Notes under the pieces: model-generated
Told to the model about the DNA's origin: nothing
What the model saw: the letters and a program-made list of their open reading frames with translations, nothing else
Database searches by the model: none
Origin: Monocercomonoides exilis PA203
Taxonomy: Eukaryota > Protista > Preaxostyla
DNA length: 64,000 nucleotides
Direction of reading: 5' to 3'
Assembly (NCBI GenBank): GCA_001643675.2
Contig: LSRY02000055.1
Location: 310,001 to 374,000 of the forward strand
Made by a program: the position numbers and the translations under genes
Shown here: positions 1 to 64,000 of the stretch, one piece after another
How positions within the stretch are numbered: the first letter of the stretch is position 1
How the letters are laid out: every line of letters starts with the position of its first letter

Positions 1-18
1 ACCCAAACCACATGTCCG

Positions 19-30507: not shown

Positions 30508-31090
30508 GATTCAATGATCATCAGAAATGAAAAAACGGAATATTTCATTCACAGAATGAGAAATCCGTGAGGGAGCATGACCTGTAGAGCTAGAAATATT
30601 ATTTCCTGTGTGACAACAGACAATGGTGGAGATTCAAAAATTCTGAAATTCTGCCTGATGATTGTTGGAGATTGGATGGCCAAGGGGAACACAACAGTTT
30701 CATCAATAACACAAAAAGACAGAATGTATGTAATTTATATTGTTCAATTGATTGTGAAGATATTTCCGTCTGTATCCTCTCCAAAGTGCAGGAATGTGAG
30801 TTATTGTTGAAATGGCCAATCTCCGCTTTGTGGAGCAATGCGATGTAAATGGAGCTGATTACTATATAGAAATTGGGAAATAAAGGAAGTTACGGAAGAT
30901 ACATGATTTTTATTTGAACAAGAGATGAAAACAAATTCGACTGATGTTTTATTGAATGAAGATGAAAAGAAGGAATTGTGTGAAGAACAAAACCTGCACA
31001 AAACTATGTAGAATTGTGGAATTAAATGCAGGGAGAGCAGTTTTTTGTCAAGGAAAGTGGCTGGCAATATCGAGGGAAAGACATTTATTA
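30508..31090 (+). repeat. ~580-bp dispersed repeat R (degenerate coding-like) at the outer end of P1; mirror at ~45265-45847
   Basis: A third, diverged copy lies at ~57365-57950. All three share the end GATTCAATGATCATCAGA. Confidence 0.85.
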
Positions 31091-32290
31091 CTTAAAACAG
31101 GCAAGAATTCAATGGAAAAAAGGAGAGCCCCAAAATATCAGTTTTATTTAGAAGGTTTTCCTGTTTCTCTGAATGCACAAGGCAGATATGCAAATGGATC
31201 TATTCCATTTGGCTTCAATGAATTAGAAATTCGACAAGTTCACCGATTTTGACAAGTGGTTTATTTTGCTTCGATTTGGAGTTGGCAGAGATTGACTGGA
31301 AGATAGAGTTTGGATGTTCTTTCGTTTGAGGGTCTTTCGTTTTTGCTCTGTTTCTTGGAAGCTTTTTGAAGCATCGGGTGTTTTGAAGGGCCAGCGATGG
31401 GAACCAGGCAACAGACAGGCAAGCCGAGTGTCAGAACTGCATTGGAGGTGGCTGCCCTTCCGTTTGTGCTTCTCTGCAACCACTTTTCAACTGCAAGCAT
31501 CAGCCTTGCTCTTCATTTGTCCTCATCTTCGTCTTTGCCTTCGATATCCATTATTCAGGACGACCTGCAAATATCATCTGGGGAGCAGTATTCTTTTGGG
31601 CAAGCGGAGCAGCTGGAGGTGCCCTTCCATCAGCTTCATTTTGTCGTGCATCAAATGTGGCTTAATCTCAGAATGTTGTGTGTGCAGAGGATACGAACGC
31701 AGGCGAATCACAAGAAAATGCGTGTGGTGGCGGAGTGTGGGTGCACAGACGAAGCATGCACACTCGGCAAAAGAGGCACTTGATCGGGGGTAGCGCTTCA
31801 TGCCCAGGAACGCACAACGAGGCGAATGTTTAGATGAAGATATATGTGTGTGCACATAACGGAAGAAGCTGGGCAGAGTGGCGGGCTGGTTGAATGGGAA
31901 CAGGGAAAGGAGAGGCAGGACAGGAAGATGTGGCAGGGCGTTGTGAAAAGAGAGGTTGGGAATGGAGGGGGAGGTGAGAGAGAAGAGAGAAAGGATTTGA
32001 GGAATAAAAGAAAAGGAGGAAGGGGAAAAGTGCAGAATGAGGCATGGCTATTTAGCGTTTGGGGTGCCTTCTTTCCATCTTATTGAGGGTGCGGCATGGC
32101 AAGGTGGGGGAATCTCCTCTTCTGGTGGGGTCGAGGAGAAGGTGGAATTCTTCTGTTAAGAGCGGGAATGCTATCTTTATTGCAGTCTTCTGTGCGCGTA
32201 TCAGTTGAAGTGGACAGGGCTTGGAGCTAATTGAGATGACAGTGATGACGCCGATGAAAAGAAAAAAGAAAAGAAAAGATGAAGGATGAA

Positions 32291-32384
32291 GGAAGAAGGA
32301 AGAAGGAAGAAGGAAGAAGGAAGAAGGAAGAAGGAAGAAGGAAGAAGGAAGAAGGAAGAAGGAAGAAGGAAGAAGGAAGAAGGA
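32291..32384. repeat. (GGAAGAA)n heptamer microsatellite; mirror at ~43968-44061
   Basis: About 13 tandem 7-mers; these generate the spurious EEGRRKK / PSSFFLL ORFs. Confidence 0.9.
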
Positions 32385-34029
32385 ACTGGGATGACTATGA
32401 TGAGATGGATGAAGAAACATTTGCAAATTGTCCGACACGAGGATACATGTCTCAGGAGAGATGTTTGCAGTTTGCACAAGTTGTGAACGCTTTCTATTCT
32501 GAAAGAGACTGTGGGAATTCTTCTGGACAACGCATGTTCTGGAGACAGCTGTGTATTGTGCTCTTCATGTGGCAAAAATGGATGCTGCCGCCAAAATTGC
32601 TTAATCATCCATCCCTCATGCTTGCCATCTCTGTATTCCTTGTTTCACACGACCGCTCACATAGCTTTTCGCAGGTCTTGTCATGCGTGATTGTCAGATA
32701 ATCCGAGAGCCGACCTTCAAACAACTTCCAGCATATTCTGCTTCTCCATTTTCGAAGCGTGCTTTTGCGTTGAGAGTTCTGTGGGCAGATGCTGTTTGCA
32801 GCTGCACTTCAAGAGAGAAGCACGGGCACTCTTGAAGCACTTGGCTCCTTTGCCTGATTCTTGATCTACCCGAGACAGATTTTCGAAGATGTCTCTCTTC
32901 GAAAATCGCGTTCTTCCTCTTTCAAATGGCACATATGCCTTTGTTATTTTGGCATATATTATTATTCGCCTTCTTCGCATATATCAACTTTTTCGCCTTT
33001 TCTGTTGTGATCATCTTTTTTACGCTCATGTTTCCTTGTTCTTCATCCATTGCTTTCCAGATGAAGCCAACAAATATGGCGAGTGCCTTCGGGAAGAAAA
33101 CCTCTTCAGGCGAATAACAACTGAATCCCAATGCTCCTTGATTGAAAGAGCATCTCCTCCCTATCCATTTCTCTTCCTGGTCTTTATTCTTGTTTTTGTT
33201 TCTGATTGTGGGTATTTCTTGTTCGGCAGCCAAGATTGGCAAAGAAGAAAAAGAGGAAGAAAGAGTCCATTTGATATTTTGGCAGGTGATGTTATTTTGT
33301 GAGAATCTTTTCATTGTTTCGATGGAGGATGTGCTGCATGGTGGAATCGATTTGGGAGGGAATTGAAGAGAAGAAAAAGAAAAGAAGAGGGGGGATGACA
33401 AAGATAATGATTTTTCCTGGTGATCTACCAAGCAAAGCACAGTTTGATTCTTCTTTGTTTCACCAAGCAAGCATTTGAATGAAAACTTCTTTCCTTCCAA
33501 TGTTATCCACATTCTTGTTCGAATTATTCTTTCTGAAGAATTCAAACTGAAGAATCCATTCCTGGTTGCAACAAGCAAATTATTTATATGTCTATGCTCG
33601 TTTTGGCAATGATCGATATTTCTGAGGGAGGAGCGATCTGGATGGAGTGCCATGACGAGTGTGGTTTCTGAAGCATCAGGAGAGTGGAGCAGTCTTTTGC
33701 TGTGGGAAGGTCGAATGATCAGATTCAGATGACACTTGCTGTTTAGTGTTGCAAGCAGAGGAAGAAAATGAAAGAAGAAGAGAAGAAGAGAGGAGGAGGA
33801 GGAGGAAGAACATTTTGAGGGAAAGAGGAAGAAATGGGAAAGAAGATTTTGAGAAAATTGTTAATGTTGAGTGGAGATGTGGGGAAAGAAGAGGAAGCCA
33901 AAGACAGAAAATGAAATTTCGTGTGAGGAGCGAGGAAAGTGCGAGAAGGAAGAGAAAGACGCATGAGCGTTGCATCCGATGAATTTATGAACAGAGGATT
34001 TGAGTTTTCTCGTTTGATCCATTGCAATC

Positions 34030-34102
34030 ATTTTATTTTATTTTATTTTATTTTATTTTATTTTATTTTATTTTATTTTATTTTTTTATTTTATTTTATT
34101 TT
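34030..34102. repeat. (ATTTT)n microsatellite; mirror at ~42250-42321
   Basis: Visible tandem pentamer. Confidence 0.9.
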
Positions 34103-34564
34103 TTTGGTGTGTATGTGAGAAATATTTATTGATTTATATGATTTGGTTTTGGGAGATTTGAATTTTTGAGGGAACATTCAGCACCCATGCCAGCACATGG
34201 AGTTGGGAAAAGACAGATCAGGAGATGAGTGTGAAACGATGACAGAAGTGAGAAGTGAAATGAATATGATTGGGGATATTTGAAGGATTAATGAGGCGGA
34301 TTGAAAAGAAGGGGATGATGAGACAGAAGAGAGAGAGGAAAATTGAAGAAATGGCTGAAGAAGGAGTCTGACAAGAATTTGAAAAAACGAAGGTATGAAT
34401 TAGAAAATTGATTGAAAAGGAATGAATAGAGAGGAAAACGAGGAAAAAGGAATTTGAAGAGAGAATGTTTTGAGGAACATTTGAAGAAGAGTGGGAAAAA
34501 GGGAAGATGATGAATAATTTTTGAGGGGAAGTGGAAGTCATAAGTTGAGTTAAACCAAATATCA

Positions 34565-36493
34565 TTGGAGAATGATGATAATTGTTGTTTAGTGTGTGGA
34601 AGGAAGGGGAGCGTGGTTGTGGTGAGAGGGTGCGTTGTGGAGATGGGGAAGGACAATGAGGGAGGGGCATTTGATCTGAGTGGGAGCATTGGGGTGTTGA
34701 CAAACATCACATTGAAGGGGTGGAGAAGAGGGGGAGAAATATACTCTGGAAGGCTGTTTGGAGGGAAGGGATATGGAGGGGAGAAGGGTGGAAGTGAAGG
34801 CAAAGAAAAAGGAGGAGAAGGAGGAAGAGGAAAAGGAAGAGAAGGAGATGGAGATGGAGAAGGCATTGAAGGGAGTATTTCGGTGAGTGAATCACGATTC
34901 TCTTCTTTTTGTGTCTCATCAGCCCCATTCCTCTCATCGCCTTCCATTCCCCTAATATCCCTCTCTCATTTGACATTTTTCAACATCTCAACAGCAAATG
35001 ATGCATGCTCACCTTCGACCGCAATGTCAACCAAAACCACTTGTATGATGATCAGTTGCTCATTTTCATCGGTTTGCGATGCATATGATGGAGGAATTGT
35101 CCCTTCTCTGAACAATCCCTATGCCTCTCTGACAGCCTCAAACACATCATTCATTGGATGCTGCCGGACAAGAAACGTTGTTTGCGAAGGAAATGCAGAT
35201 AGAAAATTGAAGCCAGACAGACAGAATGAAACATTCAATGGAGCAAACACATTCACTTGGTGCGAATGGAGTGGCTCGAGGACAACAGGAGAAAGCGATT
35301 CCGTTACGGACGGGGTATCGAGTGGAGGGGCCATCTGCATGTACAATCTCAATTCTGGAGAACTAACAGTTTCGCATTGTCTGTTTAATAACTGTTTTGC
35401 ATACAGCCGTGGGGGTGGGATTATGTGTCATACAATCAAATCTGTGCGTATCGAAAATAATGTGTTCAATGCCTGTACAGCACAAAACCATTACGGAGGA
35501 GGATTGTATGTGTATGGAATTTCAACATGTGTTCGGATCAGCGGATGTGAATTCCAGAATTGTAAAGCAAGTTATTATGGAGGAGGGCTTTATCTTGATA
35601 ATTTTCAGGTTTCAGGATCTGGATGCATTGGAACAGAAAGTGGAGGAGGGGAGAGTGCGTGTGTGTTTGACTGCAGCTTCACTTCATGCTCAATAACAAA
35701 TACTGGTGGTGGAGGTATGTTTTGTAAAACTGTTCCTGCCACGCAATTCAAAATGAGGAGCGTTCAGTTTATCTCATGTTCAGCATTTAGAGAGGGAGGG
35801 GGATTATGTTTGCATCCAAATCGAGCAACAGCACCTGATAATAAATTATATTGCTTCTTCTTATTTTTTCATGAATGCAGTTGCAGGGATGCAACTTATC
35901 CACGTGGACACGATGCAATATATTACGATAATAACAATTTGTACTTAGATTCTGGAAATCCATTCTATGAATGTTACACAACGAATGCAGATGACAGAAG
36001 GATGTGCTATGCCTACAACTACTCGAATGCAGGTGCCTGGACATTTCAGCACACGGAAAAGAAGGATTGGCTGAAGGATAAGACGATATATGTTTCGGTG
36101 AATGGAAATGATTCATATGAGTTGTGTGGGGCAAATACAACATTTCCGTGTCTGACAGTGAAGAAGGCGTTTGAGATGTGCGAAATACAGATAAGCTTGA
36201 CAATAACGCTGATGGACGGGGATCATCAAAGCGAGGCAACAACAAATGAGATTGGAGAAAAGAAGATTTCGGTCATTGGGAAGGGAAGTGAAACAAGTTC
36301 GATTGGAACAGGAGCACTTTCATCACCATCAGCTGCAGGAGCGTTGTTCAGCGTGACGACAGGTCATTTGAGAATGAATCAGTTGAAAATTGATTGCAAC
36401 TCAACAGAAGGAACTTCACCGAGTGTGGTTGTAGTGTCGTATAGAAGTGGAACACTTTCACTTGTGTCAAGAAGCGAGTTGGGCAAATTATAA
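34565..36493 (+). CDS. Beta-helix family copy C
   Basis: 642-aa ORF with a Gly/Glu/Lys-rich linker followed by the conserved family core. No signal peptide or TM. The stop context matches copy B (TCAAGAAGCxAGTTxGxCAxATTATAAATGGAGAAA). Confidence 0.75.
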   Translation: MENDDNCCLVCGRKGSVVVVRGCVVEMGKDNEGGAFDLSGSIGVLTNITLKGWRRGGEIYSGRLFGGKGYGGEKGGSEGKEKGGEGGRGKGREGDGDGEGIEGSISVSESRFSSFCVSSAPFLSSPSIPLISLSHLTFFNISTANDACSPSTAMSTKTTCMMISCSFSSVCDAYDGGIVPSLNNPYASLTASNTSFIGCCRTRNVVCEGNADRKLKPDRQNETFNGANTFTWCEWSGSRTTGESDSVTDGVSSGGAICMYNLNSGELTVSHCLFNNCFAYSRGGGIMCHTIKSVRIENNVFNACTAQNHYGGGLYVYGISTCVRISGCEFQNCKASYYGGGLYLDNFQVSGSGCIGTESGGGESACVFDCSFTSCSITNTGGGGMFCKTVPATQFKMRSVQFISCSAFREGGGLCLHPNRATAPDNKLYCFFLFFHECSCRDATYPRGHDAIYYDNNNLYLDSGNPFYECYTTNADDRRMCYAYNYSNAGAWTFQHTEKKDWLKDKTIYVSVNGNDSYELCGANTTFPCLTVKKAFEMCEIQISLTITLMDGDHQSEATTNEIGEKKISVIGKGSETSSIGTGALSSPSAAGALFSVTTGHLRMNQLKIDCNSTEGTSPSVVVVSYRSGTLSLVSRSELGKL

Positions 36494-37578
36494 ATGGAGA
36501 AATATTTATTTATTTTATTAAAATTTCTTTTTGCTCGTTAAACAAAAAGAAGTGACTTATTTATTTTGTAATAATCAATTTTGTATGAATTTTATTTTTT
36601 TCTCCTGCATATTTAACAGGAAAATAGTTTTTGTTTTCTGTTTTAGTGATTGTGATTGTGATTGTGATTCTATTTTTGTTTTTGGAATTCTTTCTTTTCT
36701 TGATTATGCTCCATTTCCACTTTTTTGTTTCGTGTTGAAATGCTTTGTGCAGCGGGGGGGGGGGGAAAAAAAGCAAAAATAAAAAGTAAAACAGAAAGAA
36801 AATGTGTTGAAGAGCTCTTATGGCATTCACCAGAATCAAACATTGAAGATCTAGATTGACTTGCTCCAGTGATTTCTTTTCAGTGTCCATTTGTTGAACA
36901 CAGAAAATGGTGATGGCTCTTTGTGTGTGAAAACCTGTGGAGCATGAGATGGCAAAGCTCCCAGCTGTGAAAAGACAAAGCTCATTCAAATTCGAATGGA
37001 GAATGAAAAACGCATCAGCGTTGGCAAAATGGTTTCCAATGTGAAAATGAAGTTTTTGTCTTTGACAACAAAATGGAAAACAATGAACAAACACATGCAA
37101 CTTCTAATTAGAGTATATTTTCATTGAGTCCTCAAATATCACTTTGACATTTTTTTTTTTTGTTTGATTTTTTTTGAAACTTTGAAAATCTTTTTCTGTG
37201 GTCTTCAATTATTTGTGGTTTGAATCAAAAAAATAAATATTAACTTCTTCATGACAATTATTCACCACACTCTCACCTGTGATTTTTCGAAAAATTTATA
37301 AGTGTGAAAAGAAAATAGTAATAAGTTTTATAATAATTTTGGCTCAAGATCAAAGATTTACTTGTTTTCCCACTTATTTTTTATATCGGAGGTTTTGAGA
37401 TTCAACATAACAACGCATCGTTTCATTTTCATAAACTGGATTTGTTTCTTGACTTTTTTATTGTCATTTCATGATTTACGCAAAATATCTGGGAGATTCT
37501 TTTTGAAATCATAAACATGTATTAATTTTTGAAGAGTTTGGATCAAATCCTAATTTCGATGTCGCTGACGTTCTTTGT

Positions 37579-37685
37579 TTTATTTTATTTTATTTTATTT
37601 TATTTTATTTTATTTTATTTTATTTTATTTTATTTTATTTTATTTTATTTTATTTTATTTTATTTTATTTTATTTTATTTTATTT
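37579..37685. repeat. (TTTTA)n microsatellite; mirror (TAAAA)n at ~38677-38775 is slightly shorter
   Basis: Visible tandem pentamer; copy number differs between arms. Confidence 0.9.
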
Positions 37686-38054
37686 TTTTCAAATGAATGT
37701 CCATTGTGCTTTTATTTGTGAACAACAACCAAAAATTACATGCAATCATCACTTTGATATTCTTTTTTGAAATAACTCGCCCTTTCAAGTTTTTATCTTC
37801 ATTTTATTTTTCTTCATGAGAATATTGAAAATACTGCAAAAGAACATGACTTTTGTTTTGTGAAGAAAACACCAAAAATAGTTCACGATGACAATTAATT
37901 TATGCAGGTGAAATGATGATTTCTCATATTTTCTATGACAAAGAAAAGCAACATGTGAAGAAACACTTATTGTTATAAAAAGCTGACTGATCGAGAAATA
38001 TCATTCTCTCACATTTAATATGTTTGAAAATACTGGTTTTGATATTGATGTGCA

Positions 38055-38308
38055 AGGGCTATTCTTTTTGAAAAGTCGCAAATGCCCAATATTTGGGTTT
38101 GATTAAACTAAATAGGAAGTTTTATTCCCATGTTGCAATTTATCTTGTTTCATCCATGAATCAAACTTGAACAAAATACCCATTTGTTGAAATAATATTG
38201 TAAATATAATAGTGAGAAAACAACAATGTTCAAATGTGAATAGGAAAATTGTTCTGTTTTTCAAGCCCAAATATTGGGCATTTGCGACTTTTCAAAAAGA
38301 ATAGCCCT
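38055..38308. mobile_element. ~254-bp MITE forming the exact centre of palindrome P1
   Basis: Ends are AGGGCTATTCTTTTTGAAAAGTCGCAAATGCCCAAT and its reverse complement. Homologous to the free MITE at 20532-20790, including into the non-palindromic spacer (GATTAAACTAAATAGGAAG vs TATTAAATTGAAATATGAAAG). Confidence 0.8.
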
Positions 38309-39857
38309 TGCACATCAATATCAAAACCAGTATTTTCAAACATATTAAATGTGAGAGAATGATATTTCTCGATCAGTCAGCTTTTTATAACAATAAGTGT
38401 TTCTTCACATGTTGCTTTTCTTTGTCATAGAAAATATGAGAAATCATCATTTCACCTGCATAAATTAATTGTCATCGTGAACTATTTTTGGTGTTTTCTT
38501 CACAAAACAAAAGTCATGTTCTTTTGCAGTATTTTCAATATTCTCATGAAGAAAAATAAAATGAAGATAAAAACTTGAAAGGGCGAGTTATTTCAAAAAA
38601 GAATATCAAAGTGATGATTGCATGTAATTTTTGGTTGTTGTTCACAAATAAAAGCACAATGGACATTCATTTGAAAAAAATAAAATAAAATAAAATAAAA
38701 TAAAATAAAATAAAATAAAATAAAATAAAATAAAATAAAATAAAATAAAATAAAATAAAATAAAATAAAATAAAACAAAGAACGTCAGCGACATCGAAAT
38801 TAGGATTTGATCCAAACTCTTCAAAAATTAATACATGTTTATGATTTCAAAAAGAATCTCCCAGATATTTTGCGTAAATCATGAAATGACAATAAAAAAG
38901 TCAAGAAACAAATCCAGTTTATGAAAATGAAACGATGCGTTGTTATGTTGAATCTCAAAACCTCCGATATAAAAAATAAGTGGGAAAACAAGTAAATCTT
39001 TGATCTTGAGCCAAAATTATTATAAAACTTATTACTATTTTCTTTTCACACTTATAAATTTTTCGAAAAATCACAGGTGAGAGTGTGGTGAATAATTGTC
39101 ATGAAGAAGTTAATATTTATTTTTTTGATTCAAACCACAAATAATTGAAGACCACAGAAAAAGATTTTCAAAGTTTCAAAAAAAATCAAACAAAAAAAAA
39201 AATGTCAAAGTGATATTTGAGGACTCAATGAAAATATACTCTAATTAGAAGTTGCATGTGTTTGTTCATTGTTTTCCATTTTGTTGTCAAAGACAAAAAC
39301 TTCATTTTCACATTGGAAACCATTTTGCCAACGCTGATGCGTTTTTCATTCTCCATTCGAATTTGAATGAGCTTTGTCTTTTCACAGCTGGGAGCTTTGC
39401 CATCTCATGCTCCACAGGTTTTCACACACAAAGAGCCATCACCATTTTCTGTGTTCAACAAATGGACACTGAAAAGAAATCACTGGAGCAAGTCAATCTA
39501 GATCTTCAATGTTTGATTCTGGTGAATGCCATAAGAGCTCTTCAACACATTTTCTTTCTGTTTTACTTTTTATTTTTGCTTTTTTTCCCCCCCCCCCGCT
39601 GCACAAAGCATTTCAACACGAAACAAAAAAGTGGAAATGGAGCATAATCAAGAAAAGAAAGAATTCCAAAAACAAAAATAGAATCACAATCACAATCACA
39701 ATCACTAAAACAGAAAACAAAAACTATTTTCCTGTTAAATATGCAGGAGAAAAAAATAAAATTCATACAAAATTGATTATTACAAAATAAATAAGTCACT
39801 TCTTTTTGTTTAACGAGCAAAAAGAAATTTTAATAAAATAAATAAATATTTCTCCAT

Positions 39858-50816: not shown

Positions 50817-50855
50817 TTATAAAATGAATTGAAAATAAATTATTAAAAAGATGAG

Positions 50856-52472: not shown

Positions 52473-52521
<49 letters not shown>

Positions 52522-53989
52522 TACGATCAGAAGAACAATTGGTGAATTGATCGATGAATATTGGAAAAGTGTTTTTGAAAGATATGAACTGTTTGGAGAA
52601 ATGAAATAAAAATGTGTGAATGGTGGATTAATTCATCACAGGAAAAATAACTGGTCTCAAAAATGTCAATGGAAATACGAGCAAGTCTTTGATCACAAGA
52701 ACATTACAACACAACTCAAGATCTGTTTGAGACATCAACAAATGAAAAACAGAACTTCACAGAAATCATTCCCCAATAACAATAACATTTCCAAACTTGT
52801 CGATCATTTATTTCATGTTTCAAAGAATGTATCTTGATGATAATATGAGACTGACAAAAATAACAAAAGATTTCAAATACAAAAAATGAGGATAGGGGTG
52901 TTGATGAATATCTGACTCAACAAATGTTGTCAAAAATCATTAGCTCATAAATCAGTAACTAAATTGTTATTATTAATAATGTTGAGTGTTTTTTGTTTTT
53001 CTTGAAGATTCACAAACTCGATTCGAATTATATGATTGTATTTAAATTATGAAGGAAGAATTTCAGAAATGACGGTATCTCACAACTGATATGATATGAA
53101 TAAAAAAGGATGATTATTTATGAAAAAAATGATTACAAAATTATCGAACAAGCTGAACATTTTTCAAACTTCTTATCAATTCAAATAAATATATTCTTTT
53201 CCAAGTTCTTTGACAAAAACAGCAAAAAACAAAAAATAAAATTGTTCAATTGGGTGATTATTTTTGAAGTCATAACTTTTTTCGGAGTATTGATTTTTAG
53301 AAGATTGTTTGTCAATGGGATGTGTTTTTGTATTCAGATGATAAAATTATCACAACTGTTTCAAAAACAAATGTATTATCTGAAATAAAGATGAATATGC
53401 CTTGAAAATGTCTGTGCACTTTTCAGTGTTCATTTTCTTGCATTCAAGGAAATTTTTCGAACCAAAAACAATGCATTTAAAAAATATGTCTCAAATATAA
53501 TCACCCAACTCATCTTTTTAATAATTTATTTTCAATTCATTTTATAATATTTTATATTTTATATTTTATATTTTATATTTTATATTTTATATTTTATATT
53601 TTATATTTTATATTTTTTTTTTTTATATTTTTTATTTTTTATTTTTTATTTTATATTTTATATTTTTTATTTTTTTGCATCAAATAGATATTTCCCCTCT
53701 TTTCTGAATGGATTCAATAAGAAACAAAAAATAATGCCTTCACATTGTTATCAAATTAACTTTGTGTTCATATTTTCATTGATTTCTCAAACAAAAATAG
53801 ATAAACTGAAGTTTATAATTCCTCAAAACAAACTAACAAACAAAAAAATATCCGAAAATGTCTCAATACTTGTGACTGTTAACATAACTTGTTGCATAAG
53901 GGAACATCGTGTCGAATAAGAAAAAATTAATTTCTTCTTCTTTTTCTCAAGCATCTCAAAGGCACACCTCATTGACAACACTTAAACAT

Positions 53990-55504
53990 TCATGAATGAG
54001 GACTTACTGATGAGTTGCAATCATCCTTCATGTGCAATAAACCAAGGTTTCCTGTCGTCACACTGAACAGCGTTCCTCCCGATGAAAGGGCTCCTATTTC
54101 GATCGAACTCTTATCTTTGCCTTTCCCAATGACCGAAATCTTCTTTGTCCCAATCTCAATCGTTGTTGCCTCGCTTGTGTGATTCCCTTCCAGCAGCGTG
54201 ATTGTTAAGCTAATCTGCGCCTCACACATCTCAAACGCCTTCTTGACTGTTTTGCATGCAAATGTTGTATTTGCCCCACACAGCTCATATGAATCATTCC
54301 CATTCACAGAAACATATAACGTCTTGTCCTTCAGCCAATTTTTTTTTGATGTTTGATCATATGTCCAGGCACTTGCGTTCGAGTAGTTGTACAAGTAGCA
54401 TATTCTTTTGTCATCCGTGTTTGTGGTGTAGCATTCATAGAATGGATTTCCCGAATCCAAATAAACATCAAAATAATCAATATAAATCACATCATGCCCA
54501 TATGGTGGATTGGCCGAACATTTGCATTCGTGGAAGAACAGAAAATAGCAATAAATCCCATTGTCTGGCTTTTTTGTTTTTTCTGGTCTGAAGGACAACC
54601 CTCCACCCTCTTGCCTGGCAGAACATGAAATGAACCTCATATTTCTCATTTTGAATTGATTAGGAATATTGTAACAACGCACACCTCCACCAACGGTATT
54701 TACAACTGAGCATAAAGCGAAGCTGCAGTCAAACACACACGCACTCTCCTCTCCTTCATTTTCTGCTTCAACACATCCTGTTCCTGAAACCTGAAAACTT
54801 TCAAGATAAAGTCCTCCTCCATTATAATTTGCTTTGCAATTCTGGAATTCGGACCCACTGATCAGAACACACGATGAAACTGACACGATACACATTCCTC
54901 CTCCTTCATTAGTTTTTGTGGAACAAGAGTTGAACGTATTGTTTTCAATTTCAACCGATTTAATATTTGCACACATGATTCCCCCTCCATCCCAATAAGC
55001 ATTGCAATCATTGAATGAGCAGTGCTTAATTGAAGCCGATGCGCTTGATTGGCCATACATGCAGATGGCCCCTCCACTTGATATCCCATCAGTGTATGAA
55101 TTTTCTGTTCCTGTTGTATTTGATCCATTCCATTCGCACCAAACAAATGCATTCGCTCCATTATTTGTTGTATTCTGCCTCCCTAGCTGTTTTTTATTAT
55201 CTGCAGTTCCTTCACATACAACATTTCTTGTTCGACAACATTTAATAAATGAGGTGTTTGAGGCAGACAAAGAGGCCAAGGGATTGTTGAGAGAGGGAAC
55301 AATTCCGCCATCATATGCGTCACAGACTGATGAAAATGAGCAACTGTTAATAAAACATGTGGTTTGGGTTGACATAGTTGTTGAAGGTGAGCATGCATCA
55401 TTTGCTGTTGAGGTGTTGAAAAATGTCAGATGTGAGAGGGATATTAAGGGAATGGAAGGCGATGAGAAAAATTGGAAAAAATAGGAAAAGTGTGATTCGC
55501 TCAC
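53990..55504 (-). CDS. Beta-helix family copy D' (mirror of D)
   Basis: Translation identical to 48862-50376. Confidence 0.72.
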   Translation of the reverse strand: MSESHFSYFFQFFSSPSIPLISLSHLTFFNTSTANDACSPSTTMSTQTTCFINSCSFSSVCDAYDGGIVPSLNNPLASLSASNTSFIKCCRTRNVVCEGTADNKKQLGRQNTTNNGANAFVWCEWNGSNTTGTENSYTDGISSGGAICMYGQSSASASIKHCSFNDCNAYWDGGGIMCANIKSVEIENNTFNSCSTKTNEGGGMCIVSVSSCVLISGSEFQNCKANYNGGGLYLESFQVSGTGCVEAENEGEESACVFDCSFALCSVVNTVGGGVRCYNIPNQFKMRNMRFISCSARQEGGGLSFRPEKTKKPDNGIYCYFLFFHECKCSANPPYGHDVIYIDYFDVYLDSGNPFYECYTTNTDDKRICYLYNYSNASAWTYDQTSKKNWLKDKTLYVSVNGNDSYELCGANTTFACKTVKKAFEMCEAQISLTITLLEGNHTSEATTIEIGTKKISVIGKGKDKSSIEIGALSSGGTLFSVTTGNLGLLHMKDDCNSSVSPHS

Positions 55505-57364
55505 TGAAACACTTCCTTCTGTGCATCCTTCTCTTTCCCTTGCCTCTTAGCACCATGCCAAAAATATCTCAATATGATTGAATCCCTTTTCCTGCATTTT
55601 GCTCTTTCTTTATCGTCTGCTTTCCCCAAATCCCTTTTTCTTCTGTTGCAATCTTCTGCTTTTTTCCTAAAATCCATTTTCTTTCATCGCTTTTGAATGC
55701 ACATGCAAAAACCCCTATTATCATAAAAACATAAAGAAAAAATATTAAAAAAATATAAAAACATCCAATATGAAATGTAACAAATCAGTACCATTTTCTT
55801 TTCGAAATCTTCTGATTCGCCAATCCCTTATTCCAGTTTTTCGTATTCTTCTCGAATTTTTGTCATATTTCTTCTTCAGCCATTTCCTCAATTTTCCGAT
55901 TATTCTTTTCTGTTGATTCGCCTTCTTCTTTTTCAAATCGCTGCACAAGTCTTCAAATCCCTCCTCTCACATTCATTTCATTGATTTCATCCAGCTCATT
56001 TATCAATACGTCTCTTCGTTTGCCTTCGGCAATCTTTCAGCATTCCGTGTTTGTGTGCTGGCGTTAAGCATCCCCGCAAAAATTAAAATATCTGAAAGAA
56101 AATTAAACACTTTTTGTTTTTGAAAAATCGGAATTGAAAAAAGAAAGTAATTACGCACATTGATAATAAACCTTAAATATGGCAATGTCATTTTCGATGT
56201 TCCAATTCAATCTTCTCCTCCTTATTCTTCTTTTGCCAAACATTCATCTGATTGAAATTTTTTGAAAAAACACTTCTGCCTTCAAAACTCATGAGCGTTG
56301 ATTGATAAATCAAACAAGTTCAAAGGTTCTTTTTCTCTTGCCTTAGCCTTGCCAAAAATCGAAGCACATCCCAGAATTGAAAACATGCTCCATGACTGTA
56401 TTTCTCCGTTCCGTGCATTTGGAATCAGACCTTCAAAAAAACACTTATTGACCATTAGCCCATCTGCCAGTCCTTTCTTTCTGTCCAATCCTTCCTTCTT
56501 TGCCTCTTCCCTTGCCAGAACAGCCGAAACAAAAAAACAAGCACAGCATTTCCATTTAACTGTTCCCCAAAAGGCGAATAAAAACCCATGCATTTCATGA
56601 CGCAAATGAAGTTTGCTGCCTTTCTCATCCCCATCCCCATCCCCATTCTCGCATTCAGATTCAGATTCAGAGAGAATCTCCTCTGTTCTTCCATTCTGCT
56701 GTTTCTGCTCAATTCTCTGCCTCTCAAACACCGAGCAGCAAGTCGCGTACCTCAAGTGAAAAGACAAGATAAACAATAAAAAAAATAACATCCCTTCTTT
56801 CCAAGCATCGCAAAAAGAGCAGAAGATAAAAGATTCCAACAAAAAGAAATTATTTAATTGTTGAAAAAATATCAAGAAGGACAAACATTGGATTTCCGGC
56901 CTTGCCTCAGACTTCAACATTTGGGAAACAGCTGATCCCAACTCTGGCTGTGCTGCTGCGAGAAGGCAAAAAATATACCAATAGAAGAAGAAGATGATGA
57001 ATGCGATTGCAAAGCATTCTGCAGGTCCTGATGAAGTTGAAGCAGATCAAAACAAAATGACAACGCCCCTGCTCCTTCCTGTTCAATATGCCCCTAATAC
57101 AAATGATGAGAAAACAGCATTGCCTTTTGTTCCGCCATGCAATTTTATTTAAAAATTCAGTCAGACAAATGACTGAGCCAGAACCCAAAGAAATCCTTCA
57201 TATTCTGTGTTGAGGAAAAATGAGTTGTCTTCTTCGATGGTCGACAAAAACTTCACAAAGCTTCGTTCATTTCTTCTAATTGTAGAAAATAAGTTGATGA
57301 AATTATACGTTGAAATATCGAGCTCAACTCTCATTGCTTTGTTATATTTTCCTTCCTTTTATGT

Positions 57365-57950
57365 GATAAATATCCTTCCCTCGATATTGCCAGCCACTTT
57401 CCTTGCCAAAAAAGCTTCTCCCTTGCCTTATGCTCCAAAATTCTACATAGTTTTGTGCAGATTTTGTCCTTCACAGAATTCCTTCTTGTTATCTTCATTC
57501 AATAAAATGACAGTTGAAATTGTTTTCAACTCTTGTTCCAAATAAAAATCATGTAACTTGCGTAACTTCCTTTATTTCCCAATGCCTATATAATAATCAG
57601 CTCCATTCTCATCGCATTGCTCCACAAAGCGGAGATTGGCCATTTCAACAATAACTCATATTCCTGCACTTTGGAGAGGATACGGATGGAAATATCTTCA
57701 CAATCAATAGAACTATATAAATTACAAACATTATGTCTTTTTGTGTAATTGATGAAATTGTTGTGTTCCCCTTGGCCACCCAATTACCAACAATCATCAG
57801 ATAGAATTCCAATAATATTGCATCTCACCATTGTCTGTTGTCACACAGGAAATAATATTCCTAGCTCTACAGGTAATGTTCACTCACGGATTTCTCATTC
57901 TGTGAATGGAATATTCCGTTTTTTCAAATCTGATGATCATTGAATCCATT
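57365..57950 (-). repeat. Third, diverged copy of repeat R
   Basis: Direct repeat of ~45265-45852 with scattered substitutions. Confidence 0.85.
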
Positions 57951-59337
57951 ACAAAAAAGACTCAGACCAACAAATCATTTTCATATTTTCTTTTTCTCGG
58001 CAATGGCTGAGTGAAAAGGGACGTGGTTGAGAAGGGTGTGTGGAAACAAAAATTAAACTTGTTTTGGGTATATATTTTATTCATTTTCTGAATTTCATGT
58101 GTTTGGCAGTGTTTGATTTCTAAGCGAGTTTGTTTGTGGGGAGCAGGGTTCAGCTTGTGGCTGATCAGAGGAGCGGATGCGCACAAGAGAAAATGGTGCT
58201 TGCAGCAGCTATGCTTGATGGGATGATTTTTCAGCAGTTCGTTTTTTGGAAAAGAAAGGCAAACGAGGGAAACAATGTTTGTGAGAAGGAGCAGGAAAGG
58301 GGAGGGGAATGGAGAGCGTGTGGTGGAGTGCATGTTTAGTGGAGGAACACATTGCAGCTGGGATTTTCACACATATTTTTTATTTTAAAGGGGGTGACAA
58401 AAGCGATTTGGATGTTGTATTTTGGCAGCTGATGGGTGGGGATGTTTGGGGATGCAGTCATGCTCATCTGGGCAGTCGAGGCAGCACAGGAAAGGGAATG
58501 TGCGATTGTTTTGTGAGCCTTTCATGGTGAAAGAGGAGACAGGTTTGATGATTTGTTTCATAAGAATTTATATATATTTTTTATATTTTATTTTATGATT
58601 ATTTTTTTTTTTTTATTGAAGATATTGAGTGAATTGCCGAAAGATGCATGGAAAGCCATCACATGTTGCCTGAGGGATGGCGATGGAGCGCAGAGTGTTT
58701 TTTAAGTCTTGCTTGAAGAATGAGAAGAAGAGGGGAAGAAGAAATATTTCATATTTTTTTTTTTTTGGTCGAGGGCCGGATGGAGAAAGATGGGAAGAGA
58801 AGAATGGTGAGAGTGAGGTTGAATGGGCAATGGAAGAGCGGATGAAAACAATATTTTATTTTTTCTTTATTTGAAATTGGATATGAAAGGCGAAGGCGTG
58901 GTGTGTGTGGTGCTTGGAGTGGATGATGTTGGGGTGAGAGGTATTTGGAGGGAGGCAAACAGGGGATGAGTGGAGTGAAGGGAAATGAAGATTTGTGGAG
59001 GTATTTTATTCTTGTTTGTTCATTTTCTTCATGTTCCATTTTTTATTTTTGTTTGTATTTGCATTTTTTATTTTTTGATTTGATTGATGTGTAATGCGAT
59101 CAGGTGTTATGAGAAGCGCTGGGGGAGCATGAAACATGGGATGTGGAAACACTGCTTTTTTTTCTGGGCATTCCTGGAAGAAATTGGGAGAAATTAGCAA
59201 CTGAAGAGCGTTTGGCAGAATGAGCCAGGCGGAAAAAACTGAAGAGAATGAGGAAAGAAATTTTTGTGGAATTTTTCTAACAAAAATCTTTTTGGAAGCA
59301 GCAGCAGAAGAGGCGGAATAAGGGGAACTCAAGCTCA

Positions 59338-61050
59338 ATGGGATATTTTGCGACGCTTTGCCAAGATGCGTGGGGAAGAGAAGGAAAAGGAAGAACTTCT
59401 GTGAATGAATTTTATTTCTCTTCTTTTTGCCAATTTTTTTCATCCCCTTCAATACCCCTAATATCCCTCTCCAAATTATCATTTTTCAACATCTCAACAG
59501 CAAATGATGCATGTTCGTCTTCAACCACAATGTCAACCAAAACCACATGTTTGATGAGCAGCTGCTCATTCTCGTCTGTTTGCGATGCATACGATGGAGG
59601 GATTGTTCCTTCCCTCAATAACCCTATAGCCTCTTTGGCTGTTTCTAATACCTCATTCATCGGATGTAGCAGAACAAGAAACGTTAATATTAATGGAACT
59701 GCAGAGGTACCATTGAAAACAGACAGACAAAATGAAACATTCAATGGAGCTAATTCATTCACTTGGTGTGAGTGGAGCGGTTCGAGAACAACAGGAAACG
59801 GTGAGACATATTCCGATGGCGCTTCGAACGGTGGTGCGATATTCATGTATGGTCAATCGTCGGCCACTGTTTCAGTTTCGCATTGTGCATTCAATGAATG
59901 TGTCGCGCATTGGTGTGGCGGAGGAGTTCATTGCTATAATATTAAATCGGTTGAAATTGTGAACAACACCTTCGATTCGTGTACTGCGCAAAATTATTTG
60001 GGAGGAGGAGTGTTCGTTTATACGATTTCAACGTGTGTTCGGATCAGCGGATGTGAATTCCAGAAATGCAAAGCGACTTACAATGGAGGAGGACTTTTTC
60101 TTGAAAATTTTCAGGTTTCGGAAACAAACTGTATTGGAACAGAAAATGGAGGAGGAGAGAGTGCGTGTGTGTTTGACTGCAGTTTCACTTCATGTTCACT
60201 TACAAGCACAGGCGGTGGAGGCATGTATTGTTACAATATTCCTACAGCATTCAAAATGAGGAGCATTCAGTTTATTTCATGTTCAGCATCGTCATATGGT
60301 GGAGGATTGCGATTATATCCTTATAGACAAACATCGCAAAATGATATTATTTATTGTTTCTTCTTATTTTTTCACGGATGCAAATGTTCGGCCAATCCAC
60401 CATACGGGCATGACATTGCATATGCAGATCATTACAGTCTTTATTTAGAGTCAGGGAATCCGTTCAAAGAGTGCTATACAACGAACACAGATGAGAAGAG
60501 AATGTGCTATGCCTACAATTATACTGGGAGCAGCTGGACATATCAGCACACAGAAAAGAAGGAATGGCTGAAGGATAAGACGATCTATGTTTCGGTGAAT
60601 GGGAGTGATACAACTCCACTTTGTGGAGCAAATGAATCAAATCCGTGTCTGACAGTGAAGAAGGCTCTTGAGATGTGTGAAATACAGATTAGCTTGGTAA
60701 TCACGCTGATGGATGGGAATCATGTGAGTGAGGCAACAACTATTAAGATTGAGGCAAAGAAGATTTCAGTCATTGGGAAAGGCAAAGATAAGAGTTCGAT
60801 CGAAACAGGGGCACTTTCATCAACCGGATCGCTGTTCAGCGTGTCAACAGGACATCTTGGAATGAGTTATTTGAAAGTTGATTGCAACTCAAATATAAAT
60901 CCTTCTTCACAGAGTGTGGTTGTTGTATCTTGTAGAGGTGGGTCACTCTCGTTGGAGGAAGTTATAATGTATTTATTACATTTTTTTTTTATTTTTTTCA
61001 TGTTTGATAATGAAAATAAAGCAAATATAAATGTGGTGGTTTTTTTTTAA
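59338..61050 (+). CDS. Beta-helix family copy E
   Basis: 570-aa ORF. Family homology runs from ~59400 to ~60965 (GGSLSLEEVI), then reads through into AT-rich sequence. Confidence 0.72.
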   Translation: MGYFATLCQDAWGREGKGRTSVNEFYFSSFCQFFSSPSIPLISLSKLSFFNISTANDACSSSTTMSTKTTCLMSSCSFSSVCDAYDGGIVPSLNNPIASLAVSNTSFIGCSRTRNVNINGTAEVPLKTDRQNETFNGANSFTWCEWSGSRTTGNGETYSDGASNGGAIFMYGQSSATVSVSHCAFNECVAHWCGGGVHCYNIKSVEIVNNTFDSCTAQNYLGGGVFVYTISTCVRISGCEFQKCKATYNGGGLFLENFQVSETNCIGTENGGGESACVFDCSFTSCSLTSTGGGGMYCYNIPTAFKMRSIQFISCSASSYGGGLRLYPYRQTSQNDIIYCFFLFFHGCKCSANPPYGHDIAYADHYSLYLESGNPFKECYTTNTDEKRMCYAYNYTGSSWTYQHTEKKEWLKDKTIYVSVNGSDTTPLCGANESNPCLTVKKALEMCEIQISLVITLMDGNHVSEATTIKIEAKKISVIGKGKDKSSIETGALSSTGSLFSVSTGHLGMSYLKVDCNSNINPSSQSVVVVSCRGGSLSLEEVIMYLLHFFFIFFMFDNENKANINVVVFF

Positions 61051-62128
61051 ATCCGGATATTTTTTAATAAGCGTAGGAAAACAAAAACAAGTTAAAAATG
61101 AACAAAACAAATTGTGACAAGTTTTAATATATTTTTTGAGTCATTCTTTAAAAAAAAATATACCCTCTGATTTTAATTTTGTTTTGTTTCGAATAAAGAT
61201 CTCCAGAATTTACGTTTGGTTAATTTTCAAATCATTTATTTATTCATTTTTTTTCCATATTCCCCCATTCCGTTTGTCTTTAACAATTTGTCTCAGAAAT
61301 ACAAGCAATTGCCTGTTATTGTTATTTCAATATCATTTTTTTTAATTTAATAAGTTTGAACGAAAAGTGTGAAAAGTTCCAATTTCTGATTTATTATTTT
61401 CTAAAAAAGAAAAGAAAAGACTGAATGAATGTTAAATATTGACAATAAAGAAGTTCACTAATTTTATCAAAATTCAATGCAAATAGAAGATTTGTGAAAA
61501 AATCAATAAATATTTCATTTTGCAAAAGCACGAATATTTTTCGATTTTAATCATGTGGACTTTCTTGAAAGTCACATTGTTCTTATCATCTCATCTGTTC
61601 AGTTATTAACAGGTGCCCCCTTTTCTTTTATCCAAACATAAATGTTTTTCAAACCAAACATCATTCTTTTACAAAAATAAAAATTGTATTTAGAAATCCA
61701 AGTTATATTTTTTTGAATTATTGTGTCTGAGATTATTTCATTTTATTTTATTTTATAATAATTATTATTTTTGATCAAAGACTTGTTCGTGGGATAAGAG
61801 CACTTGAGTGTTGAAAGTTATGATATGGGTGATTGTTTTTGAAATCATAACTTTCATACAGGGGTGTGGTCATTGACATTTCATCCTTTGACATGAACAT
61901 TGTTATTGAAACCAAGTTGATCAGAACATTGAATTTCCGACTTTGGTGAACAATCAAAAGCCAAAAAAATGACAATCAACTTCATATTTTTTTCTGCTCA
62001 CCTTTGTTATCAAACAAACTCAAACAATCAAAATCATTGATTTTCACTGAGACTTCCTGAATGAAAATCAATGATTTTGAAAAGATTGAATGTTCAAAAA
62101 GGTTCAAATTATATTTCAATGATTGAAA

Positions 62129-62362
62129 TTTTTGAAGAGAACTCACAAATTATTGATGATGATTTTTTTTTTTAATTTTGTGTTTCTAAAATAACAAAAG
62201 AATATTCAAAAGAGAATTTCATCCATCATTAAACACTCTATTTTTGAAGCATGTTGAAAGAAAATATTATCTATTCCAATTTCATTTTTGTCGAAATCAT
62301 CAATTTCATTAAAAATCAAAAAAACATAATAACATCAATAATTTGTGAGTTCTCTTCAAAAA
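62129..62362. mobile_element. Probable degenerate MITE at the centre of P3
   Basis: TTTTTGAAGAGAACTCACAAAT resembles the family TIR TTTTTGAAAAGTC(G/A)CAAAT with a 3-nt insertion. The G-to-C span is 224 bp, the same as in P1. Confidence 0.45.
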
Positions 62363-63481
62363 TTTCAATCATTGAAATATAATTTGAACCTTTTTGAACA
62401 TTCAATCTTTTCAAAATCATTGATTTTCATTCAGGAAGTCTCAGTGAAAATCAATGATTTTGATTGTTTGAGTTTGTTTGATAACAAAGGTGAGCAGAAA
62501 AAAATATGAAGTTGATTGTCATTTTTTTGGCTTTTGATTGTTCACCAAAGTCGGAAATTCAATGTTCTGATCAACTTGGTTTCAATAACAATGTTCATGT
62601 CAAAGGATGAAATGTCAATGACCACACCCCTGTATGAAAGTTATGATTTCAAAAACAATCACCCATATCATAACTTTCAACACTCAAGTGCTCTTATCCC
62701 ACGAACAAGTCTTTGATCAAAAATAATAATTATTATAAAATAAAATAAAATGAAATAATCTCAGACACAATAATTCAAAAAAATATAACTTGGATTTCTA
62801 AATACAATTTTTATTTTTGTAAAAGAATGATGTTTGGTTTGAAAAACATTTATGTTTGGATAAAAGAAAAGGGGGCACCTGTTAATAACTGAACAGATGA
62901 GATGATAAGAACAATGTGACTTTCAAGAAAGTCCACATGATTAAAATCGAAAAATATTCGTGCTTTTGCAAAATGAAATATTTATTGATTTTTTCACAAA
63001 TCTTCTATTTGCATTGAATTTTGATAAAATTAGTGAACTTCTTTATTGTCAATATTTAACATTCATTCAGTCTTTTCTTTTCTTTTTTAGAAAATAATAA
63101 ATCAGAAATTGGAACTTTTCACACTTTTCGTTCAAACTTATTAAATTAAAAAAAATGATATTGAAATAACAATAACAGGCAATTGCTTGTATTTCTGAGA
63201 CAAATTGTTAAAGACAAACGGAATGGGGGAATATGGAAAAAAAATGAATAAATAAATGATTTGAAAATTAACCAAACGTAAATTCTGGAGATCTTTATTC
63301 GAAACAAAACAAAATTAAAATCAGAGGGTATATTTTTTTAAAGAATGACTCAAAAAATATATTAAAACTTGTCACAATTTGTTTTGTTCATTTTTAACTT
63401 GTTTTTGTTTTCCTACGCTTATTAAAAAATATCCGGATTTAAAAAAAAACCACCACATTTATATTTGCTTTATTTTCATTA

Positions 63482-64000
63482 TCAAACATGAAAAAATAAA
63501 AAAAAATGTAATAAATACATTATAACTTCCTCCAACGAGAGTGACCCACCTCTACAAGATACAACAACCACACTCTGTGAAGAAGGATTTATATTTGAGT
63601 TGCAATCAACTTTCAAATAACTCATTCCAAGATGTCCTGTTGACACGCTGAACAGCGATCCGGTTGATGAAAGTGCCCCTGTTTCGATCGAACTCTTATC
63701 TTTGCCTTTCCCAATGACTGAAATCTTCTTTGCCTCAATCTTAATAGTTGTTGCCTCACTCACATGATTCCCATCCATCAGCGTGATTACCAAGCTAATC
63801 TGTATTTCACACATCTCAAGAGCCTTCTTCACTGTCAGACACGGATTTGATTCATTTGCTCCACAAAGTGGAGTTGTATCACTCCCATTCACCGAAACAT
63901 AGATCGTCTTATCCTTCAGCCATTCCTTCTTTTCTGTGTGCTGATATGTCCAGCTGCTCCCAGTATAATTGTAGGCATAGCACATTCTCTTCTCATCTGT
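63482..64000 (-). CDS. Beta-helix family copy E' (3' part; mirror of E)
   Basis: Matches the C-terminal ~165 aa of 59338-61050; the tail differs by homopolymer indels. Confidence 0.7.
   Translation of the reverse strand, partial: TDEKRMCYAYNYTGSSWTYQHTEKKEWLKDKTIYVSVNGSDTTPLCGANESNPCLTVKKALEMCEIQISLVITLMDGNHVSEATTIKIEAKKISVIGKGKDKSSIETGALSSTGSLFSVSTGHLGMSYLKVDCNSNINPSSQSVVVVSCRGGSLSLEEVIMYLLHFFLFFHV

Follow-up and report, generated by a model that had tools for sequence, protein, structure and literature searches.

How do several giant palindromes, each built from two facing copies of one gene, come to stand in a row on a chromosome, and why are their arms so nearly identical? The question is raised by a 64,000-nt stretch of the genome of the protist Monocercomonoides exilis PA203 (assembly GCA_001643675.2, contig LSRY02000055.1, positions 310001-374000; hereafter the window), in which three palindromes, P1, P2 and P3, each carry a convergent pair of genes of a predicted beta-helix protein family. 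Our answer, to which we assign a probability of roughly 0.8, is that these are genuine chromosomal palindromes that undergo gene conversion both from arm to arm and between loci. Plain coordinates refer to the window, and those with a prefix (C53:, C80:, C71: and the like) to whole contigs. The assembly comprises 82,301,135 bp in 101 contigs, and the contig that contains the window, C53, is 566 kb long.

The palindromes were located by minus-strand self-alignment followed by per-arm alignment. P1 occupies 30508-45847 (15.3 kb, axis 38177.5, 99.2% identity counting gaps), P2 occupies 47365-57001 (9.6 kb, axis ~52183) and P3 extends from 57323 to 67179 (C53:367323-377179; 9.9 kb, axis 62249.5, 97.8% identity). 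An initial annotation of the window had described three consecutive giant palindromes, and the self-alignment bears this out in all but the start of P3, which had been placed at 60487, 3.5 kb beyond P2. That start was too late because the mirror of 57323-60486 lies past the window end; the true start is 57323, and the P2-P3 gap is therefore only 321 nt. The sequence outside the ends of P1 and P2 had been described as not mirrored; the outer boundaries of all three palindromes are indeed abrupt, and the adjoining sequence contains no copies of the arms. With inverted identity of 99-100% over kilobases, chance is not an issue. Evidence from reads was taken from Logan contigs of four DNA runs on one sample and of one RNA study (run X5). 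The components of the palindromes are listed below (ORF, open reading frame; MITE, miniature inverted-repeat transposable element; TIR, terminal inverted repeat).

30508..38055, plus strand: P1 left arm, mirrors 38309-45847
34565..36493, plus strand: gene C, beta-helix family, 642-aa ORF; family match C53:344856-346469
36400..39955, no strand: type-A core module, made of the ~30 last codons, 3' flank and MITE, then the mirrored 3' flank and last codons
38056..38308, no strand: P1 centre, a complete ~250-bp MITE-like element exactly on the axis
38309..45847, minus strand: P1 right arm, from self-alignment and per-arm alignment
39858..41786, minus strand: gene C', mirror of C, 100% identical (1584/1584 nt)
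47365..52129, plus strand: P2 left arm; outer part equal to the right arm, inner 51750-52129 93% identical to its mirror
48862..50376, plus strand: gene D, 504-aa ORF; annotated model P0048 at 48991-50373
51478..51749, no strand: P2 one-arm insertion, 272 nt, left arm only; copy of a dispersed ~280-bp repeat
52130..52507, no strand: P2 centre, with a MITE of the P1 family at ~52239-52485 and a solo TIR, 52116-52154, across the left edge
52508..57001, minus strand: P2 right arm; a contig of DNA run X2 (56953-57175) spans the outer boundary
53990..55504, minus strand: gene D', mirror of D, 100% identical
57323..62179, plus strand: P3 left arm; outer ~900 nt ~94% identical to the mirror, inner ~4 kb identical
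59338..61050, plus strand: gene E, 570-aa ORF; model P0002; RNA contigs at 59132-60515
62180..62311, no strand: P3 spacer, 132 nt, AT-rich, without a MITE TIR
62312..64000, minus strand: P3 right arm, runs past the window end to 67179
63518..64000, minus strand: 3' part of gene E', mirror of E, extends outside the window

In every palindrome both gene copies face the centre, and their ORFs stop 1.68 kb (C and C'), 1.81 kb (D and D') and 1.20 kb (E and E') short of the axis, within the 1.2-1.8 kb that had been annotated. Each palindrome doubles a different family member, also as annotated: C, D and E are distinct paralogues with 73-74% nucleotide identity and a synonymous divergence (dS) of 0.84-0.90. 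The arms measure 7.7 kb in P1 and 4.8-4.9 kb in both P2 and P3, and the gapless arms are separated by 158, 378 and 132 nt, respectively. Substitutions between the arms are almost absent. P1 has one over 31008-37507 and seven in its outermost part, 30508-31007; P2 has none over 47865-51364; P3 has none over 58215-62161 and 50 in 57323-58214. Most of the differences left between palindrome arms are indels, for example in microsatellite length. A pentanucleotide tract near the centre of P1, (TTTAT)22.6 at 37574-37686 and (AAAAT)20.6 at 38677-38779, differs by two units between the arms, and this gap makes up most of the near-centre indel difference of P1. In P2 the layering is reversed, with an identical outer 4 kb over an inner 380 nt at 93% that is accompanied by the one-arm insertion.

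We extended the analysis to 264 kb around and beyond the window (C53 and C80) and found the family genes arranged as an alternating array. The 37 pairs of adjacent family genes comprise 16 convergent, 15 divergent and 6 tandem ones, so that 31/37 neighbours are inverted relative to each other (binomial p of 4e-5 against random orientation, the pairs being not independent). Most convergent pairs have ~2.3-4.0 kb between their 3' ends, and most 5' ends lie ~3.5-3.8 kb apart. Among the 16 convergent pairs, ten have an identity of 99.7% or more and an eleventh is at 95%, whereas none of the 21 divergent and tandem pairs exceeds 87% (range 72-87%). A genome search added further pairs: seven or more convergent ones whose two members score equally, on C53, C80 and C71, and a single head-to-head one at C80:1257051/1262503. 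The palindrome arms carry one to three family genes. Near-identity is thus limited to convergent neighbours, and therefore the tail-to-tail doublet is the unit that is kept identical.

The distribution of identity along the arms tells more about how this happens. In the nine better preserved of ten palindromes profiled, identity depends on the distance from the axis in the same way: the innermost kilobase is 95-99% identical, identity is then 100% from ~1 to 4-6 kb or more, and towards the outer ends of the large palindromes it drops in steps to 80-90%. The exception, C53:396260-406367 (85%), is diverged throughout and never reaches 100%. A further step is seen at C80:1280108, where arm identity is 99.9% between 1 and 2 kb from the axis but only 96.4% between 2 and 3 kb. 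A single duplication is expected to leave arms of uniform divergence, and hence the layered identity speaks for concerted evolution. The P2 arrangement is more telling still, as a central fold-back cannot produce a 93% inner layer with an insertion in one arm underneath identical outer arms. An interstitial tract of arm-to-arm conversion, as far as the sequence pattern allows such a statement, can explain it. Amplification of cassettes, arm-to-arm conversion and hairpin RNA had been suggested as consequences of the palindromic structure, and conversion is, on the strength of the P2 layering, the best supported of the three. Neither hairpin RNA nor read-through RNA received support: run X5 gave contigs on gene E and none at 61.1-62.65 kb, although contigs cannot exclude such a transcript.

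The centres of the palindromes fall into three types that recur at other loci. Type A is found in P1, at C80:1280108 (96.7% identity over 800 nt) and at C80:1322226. Type B is found in P3, at C53:277221 (83-89%), at C80:1195785 and at C80:1183224 (both 78-79%) and nowhere else in the genome. Type C is found in P2 and at C53:401313 (81-87%). The element at the P1 centre is ~250 bp long and, according to its sequence and a TIR-pattern search, begins with GGG, ends with CCC and has TIRs of ~45-47 nt. It is small and non-coding and has dispersed copies, all of which are properties of a MITE; copies are located at 20535-20778, C53:246340, C53:262418 and C80:1300387 and on at least 11 other contigs. 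Folded as single-stranded DNA, it forms a perfect 47-bp stem (-68.7 kcal/mol, z of -13). The MITE is present in two of the three centre types, those of P1 and P2, and the P2-centre relative at C53:401313 keeps one of its TIRs. The P3-type centre has no MITE TIR, and the genome search did not find it as a dispersed repeat. A solo TIR at 17208-17228 and the ordinary copy at 20535-20778 lie in the non-palindromic part of the window.

The position of the MITE is exact. In P1 and its two type-A relatives, mirror symmetry starts at the first base outside the element, so its flanks are inverted, not direct, and no direct target-site duplication (TSD) is found at the P1 copy. The flanks of three ordinary copies share just 2-4 A/T-rich bases, with no 8-bp TSD seen; Merlin elements have 8-9 bp TSDs and 5'-GG ends (PMC8101967). 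Inverted flanks are what fold-back priming at a TIR hairpin would leave, and the P1 arrangement may have originated in this way.

Comparison of palindromes that share a centre shows a second level of exchange. For types A and B, the same stretch is 97-100% identical within a palindrome and 84-87% identical between palindromes; for type C the values are 95.6% within P2, 82.5% within its older partner C53:401313 and 76-80% between the two. The innermost part of the type-A palindromes behaves differently. From the axis out to ~1.75 kb, the three loci are 95-100% identical to each other, and the ~3.5-kb type-A core, 36400-39955, is shared at 96-100% with C80:1280108 and C80:1322226. Beyond it, identity falls to 60-80% through the coding region (~76-80% just outside the switch). 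The switch precedes the gene C stop codon by ~90 nt, near 36400; type B has the same pattern in a weaker form, its switch preceding the gene E stop by ~50 nt. The genes that adjoin shared cores have a dS of 0.66-0.87, which is as large as that between centre types. Old genes beside a young shared ~3.5-kb core require exchange between loci, and therefore either the cores are converted via the conserved gene ends, or coding segments are replaced, or new doublets form through an existing core. That the palindromes are each a separate new duplication, as the initial annotation implied, is not supported: the centre types recur elsewhere, so the units have also been copied or converted as modules. 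The shared cores support a recurrent process without marking each palindrome as a fresh fold-back. What had been called a recurrent fold-back duplication thus holds in its recurrent part, for which the doublet-limited identity, the identity gradients and the shared cores all speak, while a fold-back origin is a proposal drawn from the centres.

The mosaic structure permits a further reading, which we offer tentatively and consider unlikely. A small set of palindromic core modules, each consisting of conserved last codons, 3' flank and an axis that was MITE-seeded in some types, might act as recombination hubs that make new doublets and allow coding segments to be swapped between loci and later fixed in both arms. 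The array would then serve this mitochondrion-less eukaryote as a self-propagating archive for diversifying and backing up the giant ~3000-aa beta-helix proteins described below. New doublets of any family gene would, on this doubtful scheme, arise when break-induced copying passes across an existing core and returns along the broken end.

An explanation with less exchange takes every palindrome as its own inverted duplication, made very recently by fold-back or break-induced replication, whose arms are identical only because they are young, with no ongoing conversion; a broken end inside the conserved 3' end of a family gene could copy across an existing core and then turn back upon itself. 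Arms with essentially zero substitutions agree well with a recent origin, and so do the abrupt outer boundaries, which differ between palindromes of shared centre. The same core standing beside genes with a dS of ~0.8, with a breakpoint in the last codons, fits the proposed route, and a hairpin-forming MITE exactly on the axis would provide the fold. The difficulty is in the layering. Neither the P2 arms, identical outside and 93% with a one-arm insertion inside, nor the drop between 1-2 and 2-3 kb at C80:1280108 is accounted for, and one event each cannot have produced the gradual outward loss of identity, down to 80-90%, in the palindromes of 26 kb and 19 kb. As later homogenisation or layered events are needed anyway, we consider this explanation improbable.

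The palindromes might also not exist in the chromosome, if the assembler Canu built fold-back chimeras, either of Nanopore template and complement or of amplification, into the contig. The nearly substitution-free arms are compatible with such an origin, since most of their differences are small indels typical of a Nanopore consensus. Against it, both flanks of every palindrome run into unique sequence inside the 566-kb contig; substitutions separate the arms at the outer end of P1, in the outer 900 nt of P3 and in the inner layer of P2, which also has a one-arm repeat insertion; the centres are conserved elsewhere at 78-97%, and many related palindromes have arms that diverge by 2-15%. The recurring centres argue for real palindromes because fold-back chimeras formed at random cannot fall on one and the same base of several paralogous loci. 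Furthermore, the assembly was made from native genomic DNA sheared to ~20 kb, with a ligation kit and R9.4.1 flow cells; Canu 1.8 served for assembly, and polishing relied on Nanopolish and on ten Pilon rounds with a PCR-free MiSeq library (PMC8767320). No whole-genome amplification was involved (PMC8767320). Finally, a 234-nt contig of run X2 matches 62129-62362 with 0 differences and crosses from arm to arm through the P3 centre, with 51 nt in each arm on either side of the complete 132-nt spacer. We therefore rejected an assembly or amplification artefact on the basis of arm divergence, recurring centres, the bridging contig and the native DNA, and give it only a very small residual chance.

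Several points nevertheless weigh against the reading of genuine, converting palindromes. Support from reads is thin: the run contigs, which stand in for raw reads here, were mapped onto one 5951-nt stretch that takes in the P2 right boundary and the P3 centre, and the only junctions that they bridge are the P3 centre and the P2 right boundary. The 2016 run (X3) has no contig on the P3 centre. Run X2, whose high depth and long contigs point to short reads, probably served to polish the assembly; the P3 junction is thus present in accurate short reads, which are not an independent sample. By contig depths that are unreliable by the mapping method's own warning, the P3 spacer (46.8) has less than half the depth of the arm contigs (157-160 at 61182-61383 and 62360-62499): the ratio of spacer to arm (~158) is ~0.3 and not the 0.5 expected of a simple palindrome. 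This low value could stem from a bias of composition, from additional copies of the arms or from a subpopulation that lacks the P3 spacer. Polishing may have slightly inflated the perfect identity of the arms. Gene conversion is read from the identity patterns of one genome, and repeated re-formation by fold-back or break-induced replication could give many of the same patterns. As to the origin, the flanks of the MITE copies define no TSD that would prove the order of MITE first and palindrome second, and type-B centres have no MITE.

The letters of the run contigs add little to this comparison. Only 1/23 of the listed differing letters in the P3 arm fits the other arm, and the inner arms are identical, so that they are uninformative in this respect; the remaining ones are paralogues or residual consensus errors. 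At 57145, 57149, 59988 and 61445, all contigs of runs X1, X2 and X3 differ from the assembly letter, which reflects either residual consensus errors or contig coverage by paralogues only. Loose contig ends at the right boundary of P2 match no part of the P2 left flank, and therefore paralogous copies are their source.

Another alternative, a giant foldback-type or DNA transposon with multi-kb TIRs and the gene as cargo, we regard as hardly credible. It can point to a MITE-like element at two of three centres and to the more than 100 Merlin copies of M. exilis (PMC8101967), but the 130-380 nt centres encode neither a transposase nor anything else, and palindromes of shared centre vary in arm length and in their outer ends. 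These ends have no terminal sequences or TSDs in common, and the genes in the arms are ordinary members of the family that evolve under purifying selection.

Returning to genuine palindromes that undergo conversion, we propose the following mechanism. The working unit is the tail-to-tail doublet, which consists of a gene, ~1.2-1.8 kb of 3' flank, an asymmetric centre of 130-380 nt and the mirrored flank and gene. Breaks in one arm would be repaired from the nearby inverted arm, and non-crossover repair would result in gene conversion; the short asymmetric centre and the long perfect arms would favour this choice of template. Break-induced replication running outwards could lengthen the arms and create abrupt outer ends specific to each locus. 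Between loci, cores or coding segments may be swapped, the breakpoint falling within the last 15-30 codons, which are conserved. A fold-back at some short inverted repeat probably gave rise to the first palindromes; in the P1 and P2 types the candidate for this repeat is the 250-bp MITE, with its 47-bp stem on the axis. The diverged and indel-rich innermost few hundred bases, together with spacers of 130-380 nt, probably limit hairpin or cruciform formation and thus make the palindromes stable. The pay-off could lie in back-up copies, dosage or diversification of the family.

The genes themselves belong to a large, lineage-specific family. At least 155 of its proteins are present in the protein database, all 120 listed ones are from M. 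exilis and they are named 'uncharacterized protein MONOS_... [Monocercomonoides exilis]'; the genome search for the family gave 2181 first-look candidates. Paralogues that share a centre type have a dS of 0.66-0.87 and a ratio of nonsynonymous to synonymous divergence (dN/dS) of 0.24-0.30, which shows, as far as substitution patterns tell, that the family ORFs are protein-coding and constrained by purifying selection. A Pfam search with ten ORFs and seven family proteins returned nothing relevant. An AlphaFold model built from 35 homologues is confident for residues ~110-400. The full-length model had no match in the PDB at E <= 0.001 in Foldseek. The best structural match of the trimmed model is AlgG (4nk8_A; Z of 18.8, root-mean-square deviation 3.5, 235 residues), and dozens of other right-handed parallel beta-helix proteins match it as well. 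A right-handed parallel beta-helix core of the family is thus supported by the predicted structure.

The designation of the family as surface proteins in the initial annotation finds no backing. Only 1/120 family gene models has an N-terminal hydrophobic segment and 6/120 have a C-terminal one; there is no Pfam hit, and the CXXC and CRGKA motifs that mark variant-specific surface proteins (VSPs) are absent from the family. A surface location is possible, for example, for family members of ~3000 aa. The same ~530-aa segment is found inside uninterrupted ORFs of ~2900-3100 aa at dispersed, unpaired loci, namely C8:1307271, C14:2252380, C1:1866264, C1:2084904, C62:257035, C7:1275006, C26:784982, C19:143978, C19:630543, C19:666695 and C80:1156243. 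The palindrome genes, with models of 450-650 aa, may be short relatives or partial copies of these giant proteins. RNA contigs also place a GT..AG intron upstream of gene E, at 58999-59101.

The surroundings of P1-P3 contain further palindromes and repeats, which extend into the window as follows.

1..7505, no strand: right-arm end of a 28-kb palindrome, C53:289450-317505 (99.5%, axis C53:303477)
30497..31097, plus strand: ~600-bp repeat X, at the outer end of the P1 left arm; mirror at ~45250-45856
57357..57957, opposite orientation: copy of repeat X (89%), at the outer end of the P3 left arm

Each arm of the 28-kb palindrome holds three family genes, and across the palindrome their orientations run - - + | - + +. 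More diverged palindromes are found at C53:271666-282776 (97.7%), C53:402782-421493 (94.5%), C53:373596-399799 (93.9%, 1340 mismatches) and C80:1276955-1283262 (96.3%). Those at C53:373596-399799, 396260-406367 and 402782-421493 overlap, the right arm of one lying within the left arm of the next, so that their axes follow every 10-15 kb in an alternating chain that resembles repeated inverted duplication; breakage-fusion-bridge cycles or template switching would be candidate routes to it. The identity of these overlapping palindromes, at C53 373-421 kb, is only 85-94%.

Relative to the genes, repeat X has opposite orientations at the outer ends of P1 and P3. Other copies are located at C53:376530, 396260, 405765 and 417818 and at C80:1316882 and 1326966, with 85-89% identity between copies. 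The summed contig depth over the repeat is ~50 times that of its flanks. RNA contigs lie over the P3 copy, and an RNA joint at 57654/57729-57730 (CT..AC) may be a minus-strand intron. The repeat of which the 272-nt insertion in P2 is a copy is very abundant: it gave 1279 first-look candidates genome-wide, and the copies that were scored, no fewer than 40 at 84-87%, are spread over many contigs. This repeat is probably the principal MITE- or SINE-like (short interspersed nuclear element) element of the M. exilis genome. A 300-nt direct repeat (98%) connects 11349-11648, in the part of the window free of family genes, with 46477-46776 in the gap between P1 and P2.

Published work on mammalian X and Y palindromes (human Y P1-P8, primate and mouse X) describes arm-to-arm conversion (PMC8327919, PMC8600007, bioRxiv 10.1101/800185). 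These palindromes are the closest mechanistic analogue of those in M. exilis. In common are multi-kb arms of more than 99% identity around a spacer, the multi-copy gene families, arms that evolve in concert while paralogues or orthologues diverge, and a less conserved spacer and inner boundary. Within our one genome, arms of at least 99% identity, multi-copy genes and higher identity within than between palindromes were all found. The M. exilis arms (~3-14 kb) and spacers (130-380 nt) are both shorter, and the arms of P1-P3 fall under the 8-kb cut-off, a conventional one, used for the primate X. Unlike the mammalian palindromes, those of M. exilis are packed by the dozen in alternating arrays on ordinary chromosomes of a protist without known sex chromosomes, share a core module between several loci and have a MITE on some axes.

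The closest taxonomic analogue is provided by Giardia. G. lamblia has 14 identical inverted VSP pairs, ten tail-to-tail and four head-to-head, with 2190-3847 bp between ORFs (PMC2996952), and G. muris has seven, of which five are tail-to-tail (PMC7641422). The statement that nothing of the kind has been described in metamonads was therefore too strong. Like M. exilis, Giardia is a metamonad and has a large variable family with mostly tail-to-tail pairs, identical ORFs and abrupt outer flanks, and the ORF separation is similar (2.2-3.8 kb in Giardia and 2.3-4.0 kb in M. exilis). In Giardia, identity ends ~0.3-0.6 kb past the stop and leaves a unique spacer of ~1.5-2 kb, whereas in M. exilis the mirror reaches inwards to ~65-190 nt from the axis and, upstream of the gene, extends outwards for several kb. 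The M. exilis protein is furthermore an unrelated beta-helix protein without the CXXC and CRGKA motifs; nested and overlapping palindromes occur, with arms of up to 14 kb and up to three genes, and core modules shared between loci and a MITE on the axis add to the differences.

A third comparison concerns the seeding step. Palindromes seeded by short inverted repeats are known from Tetrahymena rDNA, from amplification after breaks in yeast and mammals and from origin-dependent inverted-repeat amplification (ODIRA). The hairpin-forming MITE TIRs on the P1 axis, with their 47-bp stem, resemble these cases. The M. exilis palindromes differ in being stable, germline-like and interstitial, with unique outer flanks, and type B has no such repeat. 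No third direct copy, as in the inverted triplication of ODIRA, was found beside P1, P2 or P3.

We found no mention of M. exilis palindromes in the literature, and the assembly paper contains neither 'palindrom' nor 'inverted' (PMC8767320). As far as the literature was searched, the palindromes are an extensive feature that is unreported for this organism. Their twin genes and mosaic paralogues affect annotation and also matter for read mapping and expression work in M. exilis.

Palindromes this long and this close to perfect, with spacers of only 130-380 nt, are as a rule unstable and difficult to assemble. In M. exilis, dozens of them are seemingly tolerated and actively homogenised, which would make this organism a natural system for studying how palindromes are seeded, stabilised, extended and copied. 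The MITE on the axis, the asymmetric centres, the outward decay of identity and the shared core modules are the features that would be useful for such a study. Also of note is that identical tail-to-tail pairs like those of Giardia exist, in a stronger form, in the distant metamonad lineage Preaxostyla, and this likeness hints at a common way to maintain or diversify large gene families.

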